A stretch of 63,758 bases of DNA, filler included, from Klebsormidium nitens (GCA_000708835.1; 6 parts of 6 records of this genome joined end to end with filler, not necessarily neighbours in it); one strand, 5' to 3'; shown: positions 2,437-16,391, counted from the first letter of the whole stretch. Numbers and translations are program-made. Notes: generated from the letters alone by a model not told the origin.

Positions 2437-2581
2437 CTCTTCTTCAAGATGTCAAGGATCCAGATGAGNNNNNNNNNNNNNNNNNNNNNNNNNNNNNNNN
2501 NNNNNNNNNNNNTTAATTAATTAANNNNNNNNNNNNNNNNNNNNNNNNNNNNNNNNNNNNNNNNNNNNTATTAGCGACTCA

Positions 2582-3679
2582 ATGTCCACGAGAGTCTTTC
2601 AAGGGCCAAATCATCAGCGTAAGACGTTGCTTATGGAGTTCCCAAAACTGAGGAGGTTGCTCGAACTCAAGGAAGCCCAAGATGGTTCGAATCCCACAGT
2701 GCGAACAGAGTCCACGTTGATTGTCTACATCCGCCAGCTTCGCACCATATTCGGTACCGTCCATCCAAACAAACAATTACATGATGAGGATTCAATTGAT
2801 TGGATAGAAGATCATGGAAAGGTTATAAAAGCGATCGAGGGCTTAACGGATTCGAAGGGCGAGCCCCTCAAACCGCTCACAAAGGGTTGCTATGCAGCCC
2901 CCTTTTCAATTCTCGCTCAAAAAAAAGGTTTTGTTGACGCACACAAAGCTTACAGTGACTACATTGAAGCAAAAAAGCCTTCGGAAATCGAGCTCGACCA
3001 AACGATGCAATGTAAAACGGATAAGGAGATACAGCAGTGGGTTCCATGGAACGACATTCTGAAGGTCAGAGATCACCTCGATCAGATCATCACACGAACC
3101 ATTGTGGACAAGTTTGAACAAGGCCGACCAATGACCCGTAGTGATAAGCAGCTCATCAATGATCATCTGATATTGGCCCTATATACGATGCCTCTGGGGC
3201 CAGTACGGAACGAGTTTGGTAGCTGTCGGATTCTGATGCAAGAAGATATTGCCGATTTTGACCCCAAAGCCGGCGATATCAACTCATGTTTGCTAACGAA
3301 GGATCCAAAGCAGTGCCAATTTATTATAACGAAACATAAGACGCTCAACAAGGTTGGGATCAGAAGATTGCACATTCCCGAAACACTGATTAAGGTCATT
3401 GTACGGAGCTTCAATCTCTGTCCAAGGAACTATCTGGTCATGAAACGTCACTACCTCGGCTTCAAGGACGAACCAATCACCAACTTCACACCTGTGCTGA
3501 ACGACCTCGGGCAACGACACTTTGGTAAGAATCTTTCGTGTACCCTTCTGCATCATATATCCCATATAGAACTCACACCCGGTTTGGGTTCACGAGGCGA
3601 TGTTCGAAAGAAGTGCGAATTTATAGGACACTCACTTTCGACCGCACTGAATCACTACGAACGACGATGGTCACCCTAA
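2582..3679 (+). CDS. Tyrosine recombinase/integrase of the type seen in virophages, Polinton-like viruses and NCLDVs; one catalytic Arg substituted
   Basis: Intronless 365 aa. Motifs: LALYTMPLGPVRNE (Arg I), KHKT (Lys), LLHHI (where LRH is expected) and IGHSLSTALNHY (His/Trp, catalytic Tyr at 3656-3658). Family assignment is from motif recognition only. Confidence 0.8.
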   Translation: MSTRVFQGPNHQRKTLLMEFPKLRRLLELKEAQDGSNPTVRTESTLIVYIRQLRTIFGTVHPNKQLHDEDSIDWIEDHGKVIKAIEGLTDSKGEPLKPLTKGCYAAPFSILAQKKGFVDAHKAYSDYIEAKKPSEIELDQTMQCKTDKEIQQWVPWNDILKVRDHLDQIITRTIVDKFEQGRPMTRSDKQLINDHLILALYTMPLGPVRNEFGSCRILMQEDIADFDPKAGDINSCLLTKDPKQCQFIITKHKTLNKVGIRRLHIPETLIKVIVRSFNLCPRNYLVMKRHYLGFKDEPITNFTPVLNDLGQRHFGKNLSCTLLHHISHIELTPGLGSRGDVRKKCEFIGHSLSTALNHYERRWSP

Positions 3680-3863
3680 TCGACTTCAAAATCCTTGAGA
3701 TGCGTGACCACAAAACTGCGATATCATGTCATGCGACTCGGGTCTTTCTATAAACAGCTAGCGAGTGCCTTTCTTGCAACGGTGAGAGGCACGAGCGGAT
3801 ATCCGTGCGTTTGAAGGTTCGATTTTTTCTGACTCCAGACCATAGAGGCAACCGGGCCCCAAC

Positions 3864-4115
3864 ATGGAGTCGAGCATCCACAACCACTCGTCACCAAGCG
3901 TGTGCCCTCATTGCATGGAGGCTGTAATCTACAAAGCAGAGCATCAAAATAAGAAGCGGGCGTACAGTAAATCGTATTACGCAATACATAAGGACGAGAT
4001 ATTGCTCCGGAGAGCTCTTGAACGCGAAGAGCATGGCGAGAAGCTCTCCAAACGCACAAGGGACCGACTTTATAAGGCGAAGATTACTACTAGCCCTATG
4101 ATTCGGTCGTATTAA
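3864..4115 (+). CDS. Small basic protein (83 aa) with CxxC and a KRAYSKSYYAIHKDEI helical motif, virus-like
   Basis: ATG-initiated and co-oriented between the recombinase and the primase. It is Lys/Arg-rich, and similar short motifs occur in small proteins of large DNA viruses. Function unknown. Confidence 0.5.
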   Translation: MESSIHNHSSPSVCPHCMEAVIYKAEHQNKKRAYSKSYYAIHKDEILLRRALEREEHGEKLSKRTRDRLYKAKITTSPMIRSY

Positions 4116-4349
4116 GCTGACAACTCGATTTGAAGGAATGAGTTTAAACGGACTACCAGATCCCATGAAGCCCTGAGGTCAAAATGGCTTCACGGTAATC
4201 CGTCACGCACCACGTTTTTTCAGGAGTTGAAAATCTGATGAGGCGTCATGACACGAACCGCGCTTTGAGTGCCGCCGCGTTTTAGGCTGCCAAAAAATTT
4301 GTACCCCTGAAACATAGGGGTATGTTGACCTTAATCGGACTGAGTTGAA

Positions 4350-7188
4350 ATGGCGAAACATTTCACGACCTTGCGCGAGAGGGCCTCTATGCCGTCCCGG
4401 CAAAGGTCGTACGCGAAGAAAACGGGAGCAAGAAAGTCCGGGGAACGATGCCGCATGCGAAAGGTGACACGGCCATCAGATCGAAATCCGAATGGAATGC
4501 TGCACGCGGAAGGATTTCGGAATTCATTGAGGAGCGAGGGTACAACTTTGCGGCTACAAAATGTGGTGTCATTTCCGATCTCTTTGTGCTTGACGTCGAC
4601 ACTGCAGATAAGCCCGATGAAGACATCATGGCCGGCATGCCCCTCTGGCAGCGTTTGATTGCAGAAAATGGGGACCCTCCCACCCTACGAGTGTCTACGC
4701 TCAGTGGAGGGCTTCATTATTACTTCTTACTGGGAGAATCGCTCAACAACGGGCTAAAGTCAGGGAAGGATTTTGTCAGCGTGGACTTCGACGGCCAGCT
4801 TTACGGGATTGACGGCCGCGGCGAGGGCGGCATCGCCTTTTGCCCACCGAGCACCCTAGGAGACGGGTTGGCATACAAATGGAACACGGCACCTATCAGG
4901 GCCAACATCAAGCCCGCCCCCGCGTGGGTGATCGAATCCATCAACGGCTGTGCAAAACGCGCGGGTCAAATGAGTGTTGCGCCAACTTTGAGCTGCAGAT
5001 TTGATGATACCGCAATGGTGGGGGGGTTTGAAAGTGAAAAAGACGAAGTGCCTGATTTGGGCACCGGCGAATCCGGCGAGTCGTGCATCGACGAGAGCTC
5101 ACTAACCCCCCGTGACGCTGAACCCGCCGAGAGCAAGATCGCGGACGGTATGATGAAGCTATTACGAAACGACGGACTTGACTCTAACGTCCGTTTCTCC
5201 GGCAAGGTCACTCCGCGTGGATCGGACGGCACTTTCTACTCGTTCGTTTGCGACGGGCCACGGAAATGCATACACGGCCATCGGCATCACGGAAGCAACA
5301 ACTTCACCCTCATAAAGCGTGGGTGGACCGTCATGTACCGGTGTTTTGGCGCCGAATGTTCAGATAAGCCGCTCAAGGAGCTAGGGAACCTCGGCCTTGC
5401 CGTGTCCTTGCTTGATGCAAACCAGGGAAGCTGCATCCAACGCACGATAGAACGATGTTCCCAGCCAACTGCGGGGCAGGCTTATCGAAGTCTGAGTTGC
5501 AGGCGCATCTGAATCTGATCAGGCGTAACGTGACGCAGCGCTATCGAGGCATGGCTGGCATCTTCTCTGCCATGCACCTCATCGATGGACGCATTCTAGC
5601 TCAGGAGAAAACGTTTCAATACTGGACTGGCCGCCGGTGGATTACCGACAATGCGTTTCACGTTCAAAGTGTCTTTAGCAGCCACATGTCCCGGATCATG
5701 AGCTGGTATGCAAACCAGAGAGCATCCGCCTACAAGAAAGAGATCCACGCCCAAATGAGAGCCTCGAAGACCTGGGGAGATGTAGCGCTGACCCCGGAGT
5801 CCGATCTCCCGGAGTGGGCCTCAAATCCAGATACCGACGAGGAGAAGAAAGCGTGCGCTGCTGCGTGGAAGGTCGTTAATCGAACGTATCCGCTTCTGGC
5901 CAAAGGCGACCTGGTCGACCTGACTAGAGGCAGCGAAGTCCGTGTCTGCCTGGAATTCGTTTTCAACAGTCTCCAGGCTCCCGAGGAGCTGGGTGCCCTG
6001 ATGGACATTGCGAATCCGTTCTTGTTTGCGTGCGCCAACGGGGTCATTGATACCGAGACGGGGGTCTTGCAAGCGTTCCATCCTGCGCACCTATGTTCGC
6101 GGGCGTCCAAGGCGGCTTTTCGCGGCCTGCCGAAAGGGGGAAGTAGGTTCGAGCGATTCCATCTTGACAGCTTCAACGGAGACAGAGAGGTTCTCGACTG
6201 GTACCAACTCTTTAGTGGGTACTGCATGACGGCTGATACGTCGGAGCACATATTCCTAATCAAACACGGATCGGGGGCGAATGGCAAGAGCATGACCCGT
6301 TTGGCGATGTTCAAGGTGCTGGGGCAATACGCTGTGGTCATGTCGGAGGATTGCATCATCGAGGCAGGGAAGCGGTCGGCTGGAGCGGCGAGCAGTCACA
6401 TAATGGCACTCAAAGGTGCTCGGGCTGGCGACTGTGACGAATCAAACGAGAGAGCAAGAATGAACGAGGGCATAGTGAAGGGGCTTTCTGGGTCGGATAC
6501 AACTACTGCGCGTGAGCTTCAATCGCGACAGGAAACATTCCAGCTTAGTCACAAAGCGATATTGAACACGAATTTTCGACCCATCCTTGAAAACGTGGAT
6601 TATGCCCTCAGTCGACGCATGGCCATCCTCCCAATGCTGGTCACCTTCAAACCCCCAGAACAGCTCGACCTCAGCAAGCCCCGACAGAAGGCCATGGATC
6701 CAACGCTAGAAGCCTATCTAAAGAGCGATTTGGGTCGAGAGGAGGGTCTCTCGTGGTATGCAGAGGGAGCCAGAAAGTACTTTGAGCTGAAGCGTACCAA
6801 CCCGAATAGCCCTCCTCTAAAGCGCCGTCCACGCATTATGGTAGAAGCAGGCAAGGCCTACGAGCAAGACTCAGACATTGCCATGCGGTGGATCATGGAT
6901 CAACTCGAGTTCGAAGATATCGAGCCGGGAGCACGGCCGACTTGGCACCTAGCTCTCGGAGAAAGGCTAGGGGGAGCGTTCAGAGCATGGTTGCGGGAGG
7001 AGGATCTCACGAGCTCGCTTTCGGCAACGGCTTTAAAGAAGCGGATCGTTTTATACGCGGATGGAGCAAACCGGGTATTAGAAGATGGTCGGTTTACGGA
7101 TAGGCAGATACAGGAACGGGGGCAATTCAAGGGGCTGGCGGGAGTTCGCCTAAAGCCCGGCTGCGAGTACGAGGAGACGTATAACTAG
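4350..7188 (+). pseudogene. Bifunctional Prim-Pol + Zn finger + D5/P4-type SF3 helicase + winged helix (~940 aa when repaired), with two apparent 1-nt frameshifts
   Basis: Prim-Pol motifs LFVLDVD, TLSGGLHYYF, IDGRGEGG...PPS. Zn finger C...H.H.SNN...YRCF...C. D5_N motif FACANGVID. Walker A GSGANGKS, Walker B DCDES, motif C ILNTN, C-terminal FKGLAGVRLK. Frames 4448-5512 and 5455-7188 overlap, and adding 1 nt at ~5419-5423 joins them. The Prim-Pol-like N-terminus (GLYAVPAKVV...KK) is open back to 4349, one nt out of frame with ATG 4350. Confidence 0.85.
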
Positions 7189-7301
7189 TGGGCCGAGTAT
7201 GCTATGGCCGTGTTCCTATCATATTGACCGGACGGACACATTACGACATGAAAGTGCCGAAATGAACAAATTTTGTTTGCTCATCTATGCTCATATCAGC
7301 C

Positions 7302-7651
7302 GCAGACCATAAGTCCAAAAGACCATAATATTAAGTCAAATCAATTTCAGATTTTATATACTCAGCCATACTCCAGTGCCACCATTTCTATAATGAAAAA
7401 GACCTGGAATCACGGTCTTCTGGGCTTTTGGTCTGCATTCGGAATGCGCCATGATCGGGCGTTGGCATGAATCATTGGTGGAGGGCTCGCGTATATGCTC
7501 ATATCGGTCGCAGATTATAAGTCCAAAAGACCATAATATTAAGTTGAATCGATTTCAGATTTTATATACTCACCCATCCTTCATTGCCAACATTCCTATA
7601 ATGAAAAAGACCTGGAATCACGGTCTTCCGGCTTCCGGGCTTTTGGTCTGC
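7302..7651. promoter_or_regulatory. Two tandem origin-like units (inverted 8-bp iteron triplets around an AT-rich core)
   Basis: Forward gca-GACCATAA-GTCCAAAA-GACCATAA at 7302-7328 and reverse ggtc-TTCTGGGC-TTTTGGTC-tgc at 7414-7436. The pattern repeats ~208 bp later (7510-7651). The repeat structure is seen directly; origin function is inferred. Confidence 0.6.
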
Positions 7652-7880
7652 GCTCAAAATGCATCATGTGGATGTTTGACTGACATGAGGCCATTCGGCC
7701 GCTTGCATGAATCACTCATGATGCCCCCCCACCTTGCCGTACTTGCATAGACTAGCCGCGTGTCATAGGTTGAAAACGACATATGGCTATAAACACGGGA
7801 AACGCATTCTCGATAACAGATTCGAGCTTATATAGTGGTGGTATTGCACATCATTCTTGGAAGCCCTTTAGAAAGCAGCG
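7460..7880 (+). repeat. Left copy of a ~0.41 kb imperfect direct repeat flanking the cargo gene
   Basis: It begins cgttggcatgaatcattggtggagggctc, ends tttagaaagcagcg, and is collinear with 10095-10499. Confidence 0.9.
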
Positions 7881-8081
7881 AAACCTTACGGGGCTAGGTG
7901 GATTTTGGTGCTAAAGATCATCATATCCAAATTGCAGTGCCCCTACTTCGACCTTCAAACGTGCACATGTATATTTTTGCAGGCTTTCAATGCATCAAAA
8001 GCTTTTTATTGAGGGTTTGCCAGCAACATAGTTGGGCCAAAGGGAAAGGTCTTGAATGCACAGAGTCGTTCTACTCAATTT

Positions 8082-9548
8082 TCAAGCATCGCAGAAGGTT
8101 GCTAATGTTTCTTCCACAATAGCCACTTCTACATCAGTTCCATAATAATGTGCCTGGTCTGGACTGCTGTACATAGCATATGGGGTGCTGATGCCAAAAC
8201 CATCCACAACGGGGATGCTGTAATTAGACATAATTTGCTTGCTAAGCTTGTCCCAATATCGAAAGCGTTGTTGCGTACGCCAATCCTTTGTGTCAACAAA
8301 CCACTTCTTTCTAGGTGACGTCGGAAGAGGAATCGCCATGATTCCTTGGAAAGCCACCACTAAGTCGGACGGCATGACTTTGCTCGAATTGAGCTCAAGT
8401 GAGTGGGCCCTTCTCCTGTTGCTGCGCAACACTTGCAAGTGCTTTGCAACTTCATGCAACCTCTCCACATACTTCTCCGTGGTCCAGTGACCACCCAGCG
8501 ATTCGCCAGCAGCCGGCCAGTGACCAATGTTGAAGTAAATAATGTCTACCAGAGACCACCAAGTTTCATTCCTTTTAAGCAGCGCCTCCAAGAAAACATC
8601 CTGCTCAAATATAAGTCGAAGGTGCTCCAGATCTTGGGCACCGTGCTGGAACTTTTGACGAGCAGTCTTTTGGATGATATTCTGTAGCCGCTTTCCAAAC
8701 GCATTGTACGTATAGCGCATCTGGCTATCCCCAGTAAATACTGCTGTTCGGTTGCTAGCTTCCAGCCATGCGGAAGCTGAGTGATGACAAAGCTCGCTGG
8801 ACCGTCTAGAACTGAACCAGGTAAACTGCTCGTATAGGGCAGACCCTGTGCAATTTATATTTGTCACTGGCCACTGCGTCGCATTAAGCCAGTAACCAGG
8901 ACCTGGAAGATTGGCCTCCAAGAGTTGCAAGACTGCTTTGTCTGCGGTTTCGATCGGGGTAAGTCTTTTAGGTAGGGTCAGATGAAGCACTAACCGTTTC
9001 TCAAGAACGGGCGACTCGGTGACAAGATCGTCAAAGCCGCTGTAATTGCCATATAGATGGTACAGACTCAGCTCGTGACTGGCAAGTGGGCCTGGGATCA
9101 AGTGTATGTTAATCTGATACGAGCAATTCCCCAAGTACTTTGCTTCGTTGGTCCCCATCCGCTGGCTAGGCCCATCAACTATAAGGTAAAACGTGTCTGG
9201 ACCCTGTTCCTGCTCAGCCAATTGCTGATGAAGGGTATGTGGCGATACCACAAGTTGCCGGTCCACTTCTTTGCATCTTTCCACTCCTTCCAAAGGCAAG
9301 GGCTCAATAAAGAGGCTGGAAACGAGGTCTGTCTCTGTGCATATCTTGACAATTGACATCCTTGGCAATGTCACATAAAAATGTTGGCAGCTTTGCTCAT
9401 TATATTGAACCAATTCATTGGATGCCCAATCACTAAATCTCAGCAAGCTGGCATGTGGACTAAAGTGCACTAGGAGGAAGACTGAAGAAGCGAAAAAAGC
9501 CAACATGAAAATCGGCTTCCATGTTGTTCGCCGCCGCAAGTAATCCAT
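8082..9548 (-). CDS. Intronless SGNH/PC-esterase (NXPE/TBL-like) protein with an N-terminal membrane anchor; putative polysaccharide O-acetyltransferase or esterase; element cargo
   Basis: 488 aa ORF. N-terminal hydrophobic helix (IFMLAFFASSVFLLV), GDS motif (FTGDSQMR), YFNIGHW, C-terminal DxxH (SPDQAHY), several N-x-S/T sites. Confidence 0.75.
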   Translation of the reverse strand: MDYLRRRTTWKPIFMLAFFASSVFLLVHFSPHASLLRFSDWASNELVQYNEQSCQHFYVTLPRMSIVKICTETDLVSSLFIEPLPLEGVERCKEVDRQLVVSPHTLHQQLAEQEQGPDTFYLIVDGPSQRMGTNEAKYLGNCSYQINIHLIPGPLASHELSLYHLYGNYSGFDDLVTESPVLEKRLVLHLTLPKRLTPIETADKAVLQLLEANLPGPGYWLNATQWPVTNINCTGSALYEQFTWFSSRRSSELCHHSASAWLEASNRTAVFTGDSQMRYTYNAFGKRLQNIIQKTARQKFQHGAQDLEHLRLIFEQDVFLEALLKRNETWWSLVDIIYFNIGHWPAAGESLGGHWTTEKYVERLHEVAKHLQVLRSNRRRAHSLELNSSKVMPSDLVVAFQGIMAIPLPTSPRKKWFVDTKDWRTQQRFRYWDKLSKQIMSNYSIPVVDGFGISTPYAMYSSPDQAHYYGTDVEVAIVEETLATFCDA

Positions 9549-10094
9549 CTCTCAGCTTTGATGCTATCAAGTTCTTTCCAACAGCTTGCAGATCCCCGGT
9601 TATAAGTGGGCTTGTCGGAGAGCTTTTTACACAACTCTTTACCCCCACACCGGCTTCGGGTTCTCCATGCTAATCAAGAATGCTCAGGATGTTTTAAGAA
9701 CTAGAACGAAATATTTCCGATCGGGCCGACGGCCGTCGATGGGCACCCTGCGTCGACGTTCGTGCAAATAATATTTCTGCGGGTTTCATTTACGGTTTCA
9801 TACGGTTTCATCAATACCAAGCTTTAGCTTTTAATTCCTGTTGAAGTCCAGTCAGCAGTATTTCGCACCGCACGTTTCAAAAAAGACTTTGACATGGAGA
9901 GGTTGACACAAGATGCATCAAGTAAAAGCTTAGCAGGCGCTATAAAATCCGCAGCGGCGAGAAGAGCTGTGCGCGGACAATGGTCTTTTGGACTTCTGGT
10001 CTGCGCCCGGAATGCACAAAGGCAGTTCGGAGCATAGTTTAGATTCCATTGACACATTGACTGGATGTTTACCTAGCGCATGAAGAGGGCGGGA

Positions 10095-10499
10095 CGTTGG
10101 CATGAATCATTGGTGGAGGGCTCCCGTATATGCTCATGTCGGTCACAGACCATAAGTCCAAAAGACTATATTTCTAAGTTATTTCGATTTAAGATCTTAT
10201 ATTGTACCGCGAACATTCCAACAAGGGAAAAGACCTGGAATCATGGTCTTCTGGGCTTTTGGTCTGCGCTCGAAATGCATCATGAGAATGTTTGACTGGC
10301 ATGAAGCCAGCCGGGCGGCTTGCATGAATCATTCATGATGTCCCCCCACCCCTTGCCGTACTTGCGTAGACTAGCCGCGTGTTCTAGTGTCGTTGAAAAC
10401 GCCGTATGGCTATAAATACGGGAAACGCCTTGTCGATAACGGATTCGAGCTTGTATAGTGGATTGCATATCATTCTCGGAAGCGCTTTAGAAAGCAGCG
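10095..10499 (+). repeat. Right copy of the direct repeat, containing one full origin-like unit (10146-10267); an extra reverse iteron array lies just upstream at 9982-10004
   Basis: Collinear with 7460-7880. Forward array acaGACCATAAGTCCAAAAGACT, reverse array ggtcTTCTGGGCTTTTGGTCtgc. Confidence 0.9.
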
Positions 10500-10568
10500 C
10501 AACATTACAGCCGTACACCTTGAAGTTCAGTAGCCATGGCTTCTACGGGTTCTGACATTAGAAACCTT

Positions 10569-13500
10569 CTACACTAATAGAAGCCGGTTGCGTACAGCCG
10601 ACCGCCACAAATCCGCTCGCCCCGCGATCCGCAGCTTCGGTTCGTCAACTCGCGCGAGTTCGCCGTTTCGTCCAGAAATAAGATTAGCCAGAATAACCAT
10701 AAAGGCGGCGAGGCTAGAATACCATGCAAGCGTACGGAATTGTACAAGGAACGAGTTGCAGCTTTCGACCGCTGACGTGTTCACCCAGCGGACGGCGTCG
10801 TAGTAATCTGGACGTGACAAACCAGGGTTTAGCCGACATATTCATACCCACCGGATCGAAGGTGCAGAAATCACACCCAGATCACGTGCCACGTCAGCGA
10901 GGTCAACGGTGAGTCAATAGTCGCTTCCTTCGTATAGAAAGCTACTCGCTGTCGTTTTTGACTGCCACGTCGCGACCAACCAACGAATCTCATCTACCGC
11001 CAACGACCCTGCCAACTTCTGATGCAAATCGGCCATCTTTTCCAGCATTGCACATGCATCTTGTTGCTCACCAGGGTTAAACGATGGTCCACACTTGTGA
11101 GCCTCCGTGGATGTGCGCTGGAAATGAAAACTGCAGTGAATTGCGGCATGGGTTTGGAACGGGGCCGGCATCTCGACAATCGAAAGGCACGGTGATTCAG
11201 TGCCGCAGTGGCCCAAACTATTTCCACCACGTGCAGACCGTTGCATGCTGAAATTCAAGTGTGCTGCACGGACTTCCATTTTTTTGCCGTCACACTAACC
11301 GGTCGACGAGAAAGCGCACGTCCGCAAAGTGCGCAGGCTCTCTTTGCATCGCGTACGCCTGCAGCTTGCATGCGTTGTCGTAGACAAGAAAGCGCGGAAG
11401 ATGCCGCCGTTGAAGGCGGGTGTAGAGGACGGCAAAGGGATCCCTCGGCGACTCCCCTCGCAACATGACGTGCCACCCGTAGATGACACGATGGGGGCAG
11501 CAGAAAACGAAGCCGCCCTTCGTGTGTTGCTGCAGTCGCTTGGCCTCCTTAACTTTGCCTGAATCGAGGGCAATCTTGGCATCGAACTCGCCAATCGTGA
11601 GACCGCTGCGGCAACGGTGCTCCTCGTGGCGCTCGAGGGACCGTCCCAACTCGTCTTCGAACGGGCGGTACTGGGGCAAAGGCCTCTTCTGCTGCCACCC
11701 TGGCAGCGGATAGCAGCCAAGGTCTTGCTGCTCGCGGCAGTAGGGGTGATCATGGGGAAAGGCGGCTGACTCTGAGCCGTCGATCTCGAGCCCGAGCCTG
11801 CCGTTCAACAACTCCTGCTCTGCCGGCAGCAGTGGGTACCGCTGCGGGGCCGGTGGGGTAAGGGTTTCGACCCCGGGGAGAAGGGAGTTGGCACGAGCGG
11901 CCCAGAAGTCGAAGGCTTGTCGCTGCTCGACACTCAGGGGGTTCGGTTGGCGCTGCAGCCACATGCACACGTCCAACCCCTCGATTGCCGACAGCGCCCA
12001 CCCCGCACGCCCTACTCCGAGGCCCACGGCCCCCCTCCCGAATAGCGTCAGGCGGTAGAGGTGATGCAGCGCAGGATGGAAGAAGGCGGGGAACCGGTCG
12101 CCATAGTGGTCTAGAAGCCGGCGCAAGATGGGGGCGTGCTCCGCCAAGAGAATTCTGTCGTGGTCGTTTGCGGCTTCCCCGAGCAACAGTTTTCGAACCA
12201 CGCCCAGCGCCCGGCCATGCTGGATGAGGTTCGAGTCGTCCGATACGGACAGCGGCGCGCCAAGACTGTAGAGCAGTTCGGACCACGTCCCTGGGCAGCT
12301 CGGGGGCCAGTGGGGCTCGACCTGCATCGCCTCGATCTCGATGCTCTCGAGCAGCTCCAGCACGGCTTTGTTCTTGGAGCGCATCTGGCCGACCTGGTCC
12401 GTCCGAATCCGCCGCCGCCAATGGAGCAACACGGGGTCGCCATCCGCATCGTCCGGATCGGCAACAAAGTCGGTGACGAATTGCACGTCGTCCCGGTCCA
12501 ATGCGACCTGCATCGAGTCACGACGGGCGTCAGAGCAAGTCTTCAGCATGCCGTATGAATGAACGGCGCACTAGCCTCCAGTGCTCACTGCCTGCCACGT
12601 GGCAAGTTGTGCGGCGTGTTTCGGACGGTCCTCAAAGCATGCATGCGCGGATCGGACGGCTGTCAGAGTGTGATAAAAGGGCATTCCAGGTTGAAACACT
12701 TGGAGCCCAATCATCGGGGAAAAAAAAACTTTCTAGATTCAAAAAGTCTATAGGTTATAGAACGCTTTTTTTTCCCATGTCGATCTGCGCTTATGCGCTT
12801 AGTCATTTATTGATCACTCTGGGCCAGATACTACCAATGACTCGCTCTCCGGGCCTGCATATCTGACGGAATCTCTCGTATGCCTGCAGCATGATCATAT
12901 TGATAGAGTCAAGATCGCCACGTGGTGCTCAAGACGTGCATGGTCCGAATGAGACTCACCAGCAGCTCTTCGTACTCTCGCGCGGTGAGGTGCTTTCCGA
13001 ACTCGACGTCAGCCGGATGGTGTCCACTGAACCGGGCCAGCAACGTTCGGAGCTCCGGTTGATGCACGAGGCGCCGCTTCAGGCCAGCCCCCGCAAGCGA
13101 CGCCGCCAGGTAGTTGCCCCCTGGCTCCATGACTTTCTGAACGTTGACGTCGAGGAAGTCTCGACTCGGAGCCGTGAACGGCCGAACCTGGGCCGCGCCA
13201 GTACCCGCAAGCCCGCCTTTTTGCCGGCCCCCATCCGCACAAGCGAGCCCCGCAATGCCGTCGTAGAGTAGAACCTGCAGGGAAGCTCAAGAGCCTTGCG
13301 TCCGTCTTGACACAGAGCCCGCCGTTGCCACATCAGCAGAAAGCTAGTCAAAAACGCCACTCCCTTGTCTATGTAAAGCATGTCGATGAGTAGAGCCACT
13401 TACCGCCGGATGCGGCCCGCATAGGCTGCAGCACTCCAGGATCTGGCGGCCGCACAGCCTGAAAAAGCCCAGGCTCGCCTTGCTCCAAGTCTCCTCCGAG

Positions 13501-16288
13501 AGAAGGATGGCGTTGGGCTTAAAGAATCGACGGGTGGCGTTCTGAGCAGAGACGATTCCTCCGAAGGCCGAGCCCGAGTTTTGAACGGACCGCAGCAGCA
13601 GCTGGCATGCGGCCTGCGTGACAACAACCCCTCGCGTCCAAGCGTAGAGGCCGAGCGCCTCTCCGTTGAAGTGGACTGTGTGCTTCTCGTGGCAGCCGCA
13701 GCAGTAGATTCGCAGCTGCACCTGGGCACCGCAAGAGGGGAGTCTGCTTTTGCCAAGTGCCATTTGCAAACCCGCTTGTCTAAGCCGTTACCAAGCCCCA
13801 GATGGGACGGGAAAAAATAACTGTTGCGATTCAAGAAAACGTATTCATTAGGAATGTTATTTTTTCCCCGTTCGCCTTCCGACTCGATCAAGATTGTCAA
13901 GATTGCTTGACGAAATGCAAGATACCAAACGCTGCAAGACTGCAGGACTTCAAAGCTGCGATCCCTGAGCTTACCTCCTGCGACCACTCTAGAGAGTAGA
14001 TTTGCGCCGTCTGCCATAAGCCACTCCATCCGGTCCCGCAAGGAGGTGGCGCTCTGGGACAAGGCGCCGTGAGGCACTCCAGGGTGCTGAGCTCCTTGAA
14101 GTCTCGATCCGTGAGCTCGCTAACCCTCACGGGACGCCGTAGCAGCGTCACCTCGGGGTCGTGCACGTCCCAGGAGTCCGTTGGGCGAACGAGCTTGGGC
14201 ACCTCCACCTGAACGCCCTCGGCTTCCACTGGCATCACCGCAGCAACACGCATGGGCTCCCCTTGAGTGCACGTGCTCGATGGGCACACGCAACTGCTGC
14301 ACGCTGGAACCAAGAACGGGCCACGCACGCCTCCTGCAACCCCCGATGCGCCCACCCTCGTGTCTCCATTCCCTGCATTCTCCAATTCTGAAACCGGGCC
14401 ACCACCATTGGCGCCACGTGCTTCCCAGTACTTCTTAGTTCGGCGCTTCCCCTTTGCTAGAGGAACGTCCCCCTCTCCCGCCTCTGCTTGCCCCGATCGA
14501 GCCCGTTTCCCACTCGCAGAGGCAGAGTTGCAGCAGCGTGTCGTGCATTTTGCTGCCCCCCAGTGTCGAGTTTGACCCCGCCAAACAACCTCGCATGCTG
14601 CTTGCAGAAGCAACTGTCCCCCTTGCAAGTTGCTTCATGGTGGCCTCCCACAATCAACTCAGCCATGTACTTTTCTAGCCCCAAGTCTGTCGCCCCCTCT
14701 TTGTTCCGCTGCATACAGGACGGGGCCTCAGAGTCAACGTTGCTTTGATGCAAAGCGCCTCCGCTGAGCCCATCTTGGCCGACACTTCCCAAACCCCGCT
14801 TCAGCTGTTCGTTTGAAAAGAAGCTGCCGGCCAACCTCTGCATGCCCCCTTTTCGCTCGAGAGCTCTCTTCGCCTCTTGAATGTGACCACAATCGGCCAC
14901 CCTGCTGCACCCATCCTGCCGCCCCTCACAGTACCAGAAGAAGTCTGCGGTTGCGGAGTAGTGGACCATCGTTCGCTGCGGTGACGGTGACCCAGCATTC
15001 CAGTACACCCCAAAGACCCGCTCAACCGCCTCCTCGCATGGCACCTCCACGACCCTTGCCCCCCGCGGCAAAGACACATGGCTCGCTAGCCTTGACGGCT
15101 CTAGCGCCTGCAGCGCGAGCTTATGGACGCAAGGGGCGTCAAAGTACAGTCGCCCCCGATCGCAAGTGCAGCTTGTTCTCCCCATGGTGTCCCAATAAAC
15201 CGTCTCCAAGAGCGCGCGCACCTTGCTGGGCCGTCCTAGCGGCTTAGACCTCGCGTTGTTGTGATCCCAAGCAGTGGCCAAGTACACTGTGCTGAGAGAC
15301 TCCTCTTCGCCGACACTGTACAAGATGCACTGCCCTGATCTGATGGCGATGATGAACCGGGCAGCTTGTGCAGCGATAGTCAGGCGGCCATCGGCATTGC
15401 GGGCATCCGTGGGCGAAGCTTGGCTCTGCTCCTCCTACATATGTGCAAGGGCAATTGAGTCTTTGACACATCACATATCGACACATGCCAGCCGATCACG
15501 TGGAGTCTGCCAGCTTGAAGAAAACGTCTTCGATCCCGTCTCATTCTGGGAGTATGCGAGTGATTCACAAGTGACACCTCTGGCTCAATACATCGGCAAC
15601 TACATATGAGAAGGACGTACACGCTCTGCCCTCAAACATGTTAACAGAACAGCAAATGTAGGCAGCATATCCTGGACTGCAACCTCAGCAAACGACAATC
15701 AGCAGGTTGAGCAAGGGCACCGTAAGACCCTCCGACCGCTAGGGGCGCCCTCCCTCTTGCGATCTCCCCTGCTTTTCGCCCTCTATTGAGAGCAGCCTCA
15801 GCTGCAGTGCCGCCGCGGCGCCCGCCGAATGCTTGCTTAGCTTGCTCCTCCCTCAGAATGAGGGGCTTCAGCTCTTCTCCTAGCAGCGCTTTCAGCCGAC
15901 ACCATGGCTCTGCTGGTGAGGAGCGCTGAAACCAGATCTCGGCAGGCCCAATCGAATCTACTCTAGCTACGGAGATTGTAAGTCTGTTTGCTGACTCTGA
16001 CACCGGACCGTAATGCCGCCCCACACATTGCAAGCACAGAGGTTGGTCCTTCCGCTGCCCTTTAACCCTAGAGTCTCTCTCAGTGACTGCAAACCCTTTC
16101 AGCGAATGCGACTTTGGAAACGCCAACTGATAACCATCCACAAGCTTTGCAATCAGAGTCTGCCTGCATATGGCGCATTTAGTAGCTAGGAAAACTATCG
16201 ACTCCAGCCGTGAGGGGTCTACCGGTACGATTGAATTACCAGACTGGACCTGCTTCTGGGTCACTGGGTGCAACCGTGATGGTCTCAT
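10569..16288 (-). mobile_element. KDZ transposase gene, copy 2, nearly complete and multi-exon
   Basis: C4 finger (CAIC...CLQC), two SWIM motifs and CxC clusters (YCCGC, CCSLCGPHP). Spliced LLYDG (Asp at 13260-13262), KGGFVFCCPHRVIYG, GESPRD, LVYDNAC, FLVDR^FHF and NTSAVESCNS give the KDZ D-D-E core. Canonical splice sites, e.g. 13404/13274 and 11072/10807. One frameshift in the G6 run at 14556-14561. The 5' end abuts a gap. Confidence 0.92.
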
Positions 16289-16391
16289 TTCNNNNNNNNN
16301 NNNNNNNNNNNNNNNNNNNNNNNNNNNNNNNNNNNTTAATTAATTAANNNNNNNNNNNNNNNNNNNNNNNNNNNNNNNNNNNNNNNNNNNN

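Follow-up and report, generated by a model that had tools for sequence, protein, structure and literature searches.

A candidate replication-origin-like site of inverted 8-mer triplets beside the primase-helicase gene of a multi-copy element in Klebsormidium nitens

Compact units, in which two inverted triplets of 8-mers flank an A+T-rich core, lie directly downstream of a PrimPol-SF3 (D5/P4-type) helicase gene in a multi-copy element of the streptophyte green alga Klebsormidium nitens that also carries a KDZ-type transposase gene. Comparison of nine independent copies of the element supports the view that these units are a putative cis-acting site under selection and tied to the helicase gene. 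Judging from the sequences, we give about even chances to the more specific reading that they represent a replication-origin-like cis site of the element.

The window analysed here is the whole stretch of 63,758 nucleotides, in which parts of records of the K. nitens genome (GCA_000708835.1) are joined end to end with filler. Its range 2569-16291 is one complete scaffold of 13,723 bp, DF238058.1, with an overall A+T content of about 47%. Coordinates refer to the window unless a related locus is named.

Results

Architecture of the units

Three units of 123-142 bp and one lone arm were found in the scaffold, namely unit A (7302-7436), unit B (7510-7651), unit C (10145-10267) and a lone right arm (9982-10004), the latter being the remnant of a unit severed by an inserted block. 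Each arm comprises a GCA or ACA cap followed by three 8-mers in 8-bp register, and is itself a direct triplet. Unit A consists of GCA and three 8-mers, an 81-nt core (68% A+T) and the inverted three 8-mers ending in TGC; units B and C share this design with cores of 88 nt and 69 nt, respectively, and unit B has a 7-nt insertion in its right arm. In the right arm, the innermost 8-mer is truncated to its first four bases. The cores in the scaffold are thus 69-88 nt in length, with 65-68% A+T. A search with the 23-nt arm pattern, allowing up to three mismatches, returned seven matches in the scaffold and none in each of 200 dinucleotide-preserving shuffles.

The sequence-only reading that preceded this analysis had placed units at 7302, 7510 and 10146 and had described them as a capped triplet of 8-mers, an AT-rich core and an inverted triplet; units are indeed present at these places, and the description holds for units A, B and C. 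The three further sites that it named (18634, 18863 and 19936) fall outside this scaffold, to which the analysis was confined. The same reading had considered the cores not obviously alignable, which has to be corrected, as unit A aligns with unit B over 138 nt at 90% identity. Furthermore, 11 units from eight loci align end to end, with shared blocks within the core.

The primase-helicase gene and its upstream neighbours

Unit A begins 113 nt past the stop codon (7188) of a plus-strand gene at 4349-7188, encoding a PrimPol and D5_N/SF3 helicase protein of the P4/D5 family and carrying one frame change in the window copy; the homologous gene is one uninterrupted ORF of 931-971 AA residues in the relatives P0002 and P0004-P0006. 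The assignment is based on matches to the Pfam families Prim-Pol (PF09250, 2.5e-15) and D5_N (PF08706, 4.4e-07), to TIGR01613 (2.5e-32, 112 bits against a cut-off of 108.7) and to the PHROG DNA primase family (1.7e-41). K. nitens KFL_011090010 matches the helicase part with 100% identity, and the Walker A residues are nearly invariant among 66 sequences. Structural modelling of the helicase part gave a pLDDT of 90, with helices and a terminal beta-hairpin after residue 456, and the best solved matches were primase-helicases of NCLDV (E 5e-26). The C-terminal 122 residues modelled alone gave a pLDDT of 50, so no fold search was carried out with this model. Sequence and fold searches with the helicase did not return the origin-binding domain of P4 alpha. 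[quoted passage not shown]

Two plus-strand ORFs precede the helicase gene. The first gene of the syntenic block is a 365-aa ORF (2582-3679), for which ORFs of 51-91% identity were found at the matching position in L002, L003, L004/5, L006, L008 and L009, and to which no function has been assigned. An 83-aa ORF (3864-4115) lies between it and the primase-helicase gene and is found in all relatives, with 49-90% identity and its position kept. Searches of the other ORFs in the scaffold, the 365-aa ORF included, against Pfam, PHROG, NCBIfam and solved structures gave nothing significant; for interrupted genes, every frame was used as a query on its own. An exact look-up of the window ORFs among recorded proteins gave no hit, because the public gene models are spliced. 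Three such K. nitens models (795, 709 and 336 AA residues, corresponding to 3440-7188, 11290-14253 and 14457-16028) fuse neighbouring ORFs across frame changes, so they are probably chimeric models rather than real genes.

Copies of the element

The scaffold was compared with a second K. nitens copy, L002, and with copies from JGI metagenomes 3300060284 and 3300060285 (L003, L004, which equals L005, L010 and L011), from a Logan assembly (L006 and L009) and from an ENA assembly (L008). This gave nine independent copies, of which two come from K. nitens and seven are metagenomic: the window copy, L002, L003, L004/5, L006, L008, L009, L010 and L011. All related copies are colinear with the scaffold over a stretch that begins with the 365-aa ORF, spans the helicase gene and extends into the transposase gene. 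In K. nitens itself, gene models homologous to the element were found on ten different scaffolds, indicating that it is a multi-copy mobile element. A search for further relatives by helicase alignment among metagenome and IMG/VR contigs confirmed none, and a BLAST search of the unit block against phage records gave no match. The L010 locus contains a second, partial D5_N/helicase fragment upstream (L010 1306-1605 and 2588-3004), which suggests nested or adjacent decayed copies of the element.

Conservation of the units and a concerted switch of the 8-mers

In nine of the nine independent copies a homologous unit starts 55-129 nt after the helicase stop codon; the helicases of the related copies are only 57-71% identical to that of the window copy. 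Within the units conservation is concentrated in the arms: across seven independent loci the mean pairwise identity reaches 0.73 and 0.74 in the two arms, against 0.54 in the core and 0.40 and 0.32 in the flanks. A unit presents six 8-mers in 8-bp register, and the 54 8-mers tabulated from nine units are dominated by G at position 1 (53), C at position 3 (50), C at position 4 (42), A at position 5 (42), A at position 7 (41) and A at position 8 (46). Position 2 (A 30, C 13, T 11) and position 6 (A 23, T 16, G 10, C 5) are variable.

One lineage departs from this motif as a whole. In L004/5, all 12 of the 12 8-mers in two units are changed at positions 1, 2 and 4, with the core blocks and flanks still homologous to those of the other copies. 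Read from sequence comparison, this concerted switch is the behaviour of putative iterons changing their specificity. The helicase shows no domain swap between L004 and L006 alongside the 8-mer switch. The helicase gene of L006 (5994-8789) is a mosaic, of which the PrimPol part is closest to the window copy (70-96% per block) and the core closest to L004 (78-98% per 50-column block), indicating recombination between element lineages within the gene; the 8-mers of L006 are of the usual type despite this L004-like core. The C-terminus of the helicase is conserved in six of six full proteins. Its last 100 alignment columns contain three L004-specific substitutions, clustered near the predicted C-terminal beta-hairpin, in what is one switch event only; these would be compatible with a small change of specificity and prove nothing.

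A triplet scan of about 150 kb of loci gave matches above shuffles at these units only; what is informative here is the lack of matches elsewhere, given that the scoring matrix derives from the unit sites themselves. Matches to the 12-nt outer end of the unit are restricted in the same way, except for one extra match in L006 and those in L007 and L013. The arm pattern was found as a single lone arm among metagenome contigs, an exact right arm at L007 171-193, on a 1.4-kb bioreactor-metagenome contig beside a long minus-strand ORF unrelated to the element; it may be a relic or a chance match. The sole match of the arm pattern in IMG/VR, L013, was judged to be due to chance, as it lies inside a coding region in DNA of 40% G+C, with no partner arm and no relative of the helicase.

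Arm pairing and duplex stability

If the arms were kept as the two sides of a stem, they would be expected to match each other better within a unit than between units. The left arm matches the reverse complement of the right arm at 18.4 of 27 positions within units and at 18.7 of 27 between units of different loci; pairing is therefore not selected, and the arms share a recognition motif. The arms are accordingly described here as a putative protein motif and not a stem. Single-strand DNA folds of the units are weak (z -1.6 to -4.5), unit B forms no arm-to-arm fold, and Rfam and tRNA scans of the locus gave no match.

Duplex stability was calculated as nearest-neighbour stacking energy in 50-bp windows. 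Units C, A and B contain the three windows of lowest stability in the 13.7-kb scaffold (z 3.2-3.6), with the minimum at 10153-10202 in unit C (z 3.6), followed by 7316-7365 in unit A (z 3.4) and 7518-7567 in unit B. Among the relatives, the unit is the least stable stretch of four loci; in one further locus units take the second and third ranks, in another the third and in another the fifth. The A+T content of the core across the tabulated units is 58-83%. A peak of the cumulative GC skew at the units (7169-7568) was considered as evidence of replication and rejected; it coincides with the switch from plus- to minus-strand genes, so it is not readable as a replication signal.

Local duplication and an inserted block

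Units A and B, with their flanks, form a 208-bp tandem duplication (families D1-D3, spacing 208). The linker between them (7437-7509), composed of the start of the tail and then the upstream flank of a unit, makes up the 208-bp duplicated block together with unit A. Three lineages acquired tandem duplications of the unit independently of each other, the periods being 208, 139 and about 170 bp. Downstream of unit B lies the first copy of a non-coding tail (7652-7889), followed by an inserted block of 2.1 kb (7890-9979, minus strand) with a 488-aa ORF at 8082-9548 whose function is unassigned. Beyond the block, the lone right arm, a linker (10005-10144) that is a longer version of 7437-7509, unit C and a second copy of the tail (10268-10508) follow each other. 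This second copy of arm, linker, unit and 240-bp tail (9980-10508) repeats 7412-7889, the best segment being 7457-7889 against 10092-10508 with 82% identity over 440 nt, and the repeated block is therefore larger than the unit alone. The tail is conserved among the closest relatives only (the window copy, L004 and L006), and in relatives it directly abuts the 3' end of the transposase gene.

Neither the 2.1-kb block nor its 488-aa ORF has a homologue in any related element locus. It follows that the second array arose by local rearrangement in the window copy and does not belong to the ancestral design, and the 488-aa ORF, missing from all relatives, was rejected as part of the system. Window 7894-9568 is 93% identical to L012, an unrelated small contig without units, and the protein relatives of the 488-aa ORF are only P0066 (92%) and a hypothetical protein of the fungus Basidiobolus ranarum (27%). 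A short tandem repeat (9782-9811; period 10-11, 2.7 copies) lies between the 488-aa ORF and the lone arm.

The transposase region and the element ends

The minus-strand KDZ-type transposase gene region (10569-16291) converges on the units and runs off the scaffold edge in several frame pieces. It has at least two frame changes compared with uninterrupted relatives, and the remaining gaps may be introns. The region is colinear with L002, L003, L004/5 and L010 at 52-92% identity, a 419-aa ORF being its most conserved ORF. The window's own transposase ORF gave no Pfam match. The KDZ assignment comes from relatives: the C-terminal third of the 419-aa ORF is 71-75% identical to K. nitens P0055 and P0020, both with a Pfam KDZ domain, and P0055, the one that exceeds the curated threshold, matches with 33.3 bits (cut-off 26.6), its KDZ domain overlapping the stretch aligned to the 419-aa ORF. 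A CxC4-like cysteine cluster further upstream in the gene was detected with E values of 0.0024 in L004 and 0.015 in the window, both under the gathering score.

Several further repeats were observed in this region. A G-box-like palindrome (12594-12603) lies just upstream of the 419-aa ORF. Two palindromes of about 60 nt (12716-12776 and 13809-13869), composed of a G run and a long A run, a core, and then a long T run and a C run, occupy gaps between minus-strand ORF pieces and are the fourth and sixth least stable 50-bp windows of the scaffold. The gaps in relatives that correspond to the site of the G-box-like palindrome (L004 15224-15554; L002 477-794, 5121-5439 and 16606-16953) contain tandem arrays of 3-4 units with a period of 90-102 bp, in which small inverted repeats are each followed by a TGACGTGGCA-type motif. 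These arrays form a second repeat family, with single-site arms, that is missing from the scaffold.

The relatives also encode a UL9-like SF2 helicase, recognised by Pfam Herpes_ori_bp (E 6e-21), 7-10 kb upstream of the primase-helicase (L002 266-6033, L004 2447-3208 and L011 912-1628); the scaffold DF238058.1 ends before this region. The match spans the helicase motifs only, without a DNA-binding domain. The right end of the element was placed where homology is lost at a common boundary in four loci, about 7 kb beyond the units. It contains none of the unit 8-mers, and no inverted copy of it was found within the loci compared. No target-site duplication flanking the units is visible at any unit.

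Discussion

The proposed role of the units

The sequence-only reading had proposed a D5-bound origin just after the helicase gene. What stands is a selected cis site tied to that gene, as judged from its presence in nine copies, the stronger conservation of arms than of flanks, the least stable duplex of the scaffold and a design like those of SaPI, SCCmec and pRN1. Binding by the D5 helicase is not borne out to the same extent, given that the helicase shows no visible co-change with the 8-mer switch beyond three substitutions near its C-terminal end, and that the searches returned no match to the P4 domain.

In the model that we favour, a part of the element's initiator that binds DNA sequence-specifically, most likely the C-terminal tail of the primase-helicase, would recognise three consecutive 8-bp sites in each arm, set in 8-bp register. 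Two helicase rings of opposite orientation could then be nucleated by the inverted arms, one on either side of the core of 63-88 bp; the core, as the most easily melted DNA of the locus, would open, and the fused PrimPol would prime there. We infer the helicase as the binder, the two rings and the start of replication at the units from the arrangement described above.

The main rival to this origin reading assigns the site to another protein of the element and, possibly, to another role, which we consider rather unlikely. If the UL9-like SF2 helicase were the binder, the site would still serve as an origin, in the manner of herpesvirus oriS; if it were the KDZ transposase, acting through its cysteine cluster, the units would function as an internal enhancer, in synapsis or recombination, or in tethering, rather than as an origin. 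Such a binder would fit the helicase's lack of domain-scale change alongside the 8-mer switch and the Herpes_ori_bp-type helicase that relatives encode 7-10 kb upstream. The units are equally close to the 3' end of the transposase gene and to the helicase gene, and the duplication of the unit block around a foreign 2.1-kb insert in the window hints at recombination there. However, the right end of the element, the expected place for transposase-binding repeats, lacks the triplets, and the Herpes_ori_bp match of the UL9-like protein is restricted to helicase motifs, with no DNA-binding domain. The fixed distance to the helicase stop codon, together with the precedents of SaPI, SCCmec and pRN1, points to the product of the adjacent gene instead (PMC7581432, PMC4234260). 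Subterminal transposase-binding repeats, which the sequence-only reading had offered as its alternative, are disfavoured because the units lie about 7 kb inside a right end that has no 8-mers; their internal position, the lack of 8-mers at that end and the lack of a target-site duplication argue against both subterminal transposase sites and a nested miniature element.

The position between two convergent 3' ends would also suit a bidirectional transcript 3'-end or terminator element of the helicase and transposase genes, forming a hairpin in RNA or DNA. The arms can pair, as seen in the single-strand DNA folds, and two further palindromic A+T-rich units occur in gaps between minus-strand ORF pieces. 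We nevertheless regard a terminator as improbable, since complementarity is no higher within units than between them (18.4 against 18.7 of 27), mismatches are located at the variable 8-mer positions and are not compensated, unit B has no arm-to-arm fold and no Rfam family was matched; moreover, a stem needs neither a direct 8-bp triplet in each arm nor a concerted switch. Still less probable, to a degree that we hardly count it as a contender, is a nested MITE or foldback transposon, a passenger without a role for the host element. Units of 117-142 bp with terminal inverted repeats of 23-27 nt and an A+T-rich interior do have the look of such an element, and the local duplication of units and the lone arm on the unrelated 1.4-kb metagenome contig L007 would agree with it. 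On the other hand, a passenger would hardly occupy one site across nine diverged copies with its arms conserved and the flanks decayed to 32-40%, show no target-site duplication at any unit and leave no other copy in about 150 kb of related loci.

Significance of the element family

The combination of genes suggests that a streptophyte alga harbours a family of elements that bear a transposase and have replication genes of their own. It is conceivable, and we raise it tentatively, that these elements represent an undescribed eukaryotic class, in which a KDZ cut-and-paste transposon with a virus-like replication module (PrimPol-SF3 and UL9-like SF2 helicases) and an iteron origin would amplify extrachromosomally between excision and reinsertion, its lineages diverging in origin specificity like plasmid incompatibility groups. 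A literature search, which was not exhaustive, found no description of KDZ elements with primase-helicase genes. To our knowledge, almost nothing has been established about the origins of eukaryotic mobile elements and of D5-type primase-helicases, and we know of no defined origin-recognition site in large DNA viruses with D5-type helicases. The units provide a compact, conserved candidate site beside a D5-type helicase, with natural variants in the form of one lineage with switched 8-mers and one mosaic helicase; the way in which D5 helicases find their start sites therefore becomes approachable by comparison and structure.

Comparison with known systems

Phage P4 gp-alpha is a primase-helicase whose C-terminal winged helix binds octamer iterons at the P4 ori and crr. 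The Klebsormidium units have octamers in common with this system; the likeness of the binding domains is putative, and the P4 domain was not returned for the Klebsormidium helicase in sequence or fold searches. In the SF3 origins of the polyomavirus and papillomavirus type, inverted initiator sites lie next to or on both sides of an A+T-rich stretch that melts easily, and two opposed helicase rings are formed; in herpesvirus oriS inverted UL9 boxes flank an A+T spacer. The motifs and spacing in these viral origins are unrelated to those described here and their initiators bind through other domains. En/Spm (CACTA) has short motifs, direct and inverted, beside a transposase gene of a related superfamily and within a few hundred bp of both ends. 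Unlike these, the Klebsormidium units are internal, about 7 kb from a right end that has none.

Closer parallels are found among bacterial and archaeal elements. The Rep protein of SaPI and Cch2 of SCCmec bind repeats directly downstream of their own genes via the C-terminal domain, and SaPI5 Rep and Cch2 belong to the Primase_Cterm/D5_N family and are proposed to bind as two hexamers (PMC7581432). Shared with the Klebsormidium element are short iterons right downstream of the gene for a self-loading initiator helicase of the same D5_N family. SaPI and SCCmec are bacterial, with tyrosine or serine recombinases and iterons of 5-6 nt, whereas the element described here belongs to a eukaryotic alga, has a KDZ-type transposase as partner and presents 8-mers in two inverted triplets about 65-90 bp apart, with binding that is putative. 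The origin of plasmid pRN1 from Sulfolobus is an inverted-repeat element of about 100 nt within 166 bp downstream of orf904, which encodes a PrimPol, an SF3 helicase and a C-terminal domain (PMC4234260). The location downstream of a PrimPol-SF3 helicase gene is the same in both cases; in contrast to pRN1, the Klebsormidium arms gave no sign that pairing is selected over and above the motif they have in common.

Teratorn of medaka, a piggyBac transposon fused with a herpesvirus, links a transposase to virus-type replication in a multi-copy element (PMC5822658). The Klebsormidium element resembles Teratorn in uniting a cut-and-paste transposase and a virus-type DNA replication module in one multi-copy element, and differs from it in that both the transposase and the replication genes are different and no capsid or packaging genes were identified here. 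The design of the units is itself known from SaPI, SCCmec and pRN1; what is new is the setting, a nuclear, multi-copy, KDZ-bearing element of a eukaryotic alga with inverted triplets of 8-mers.
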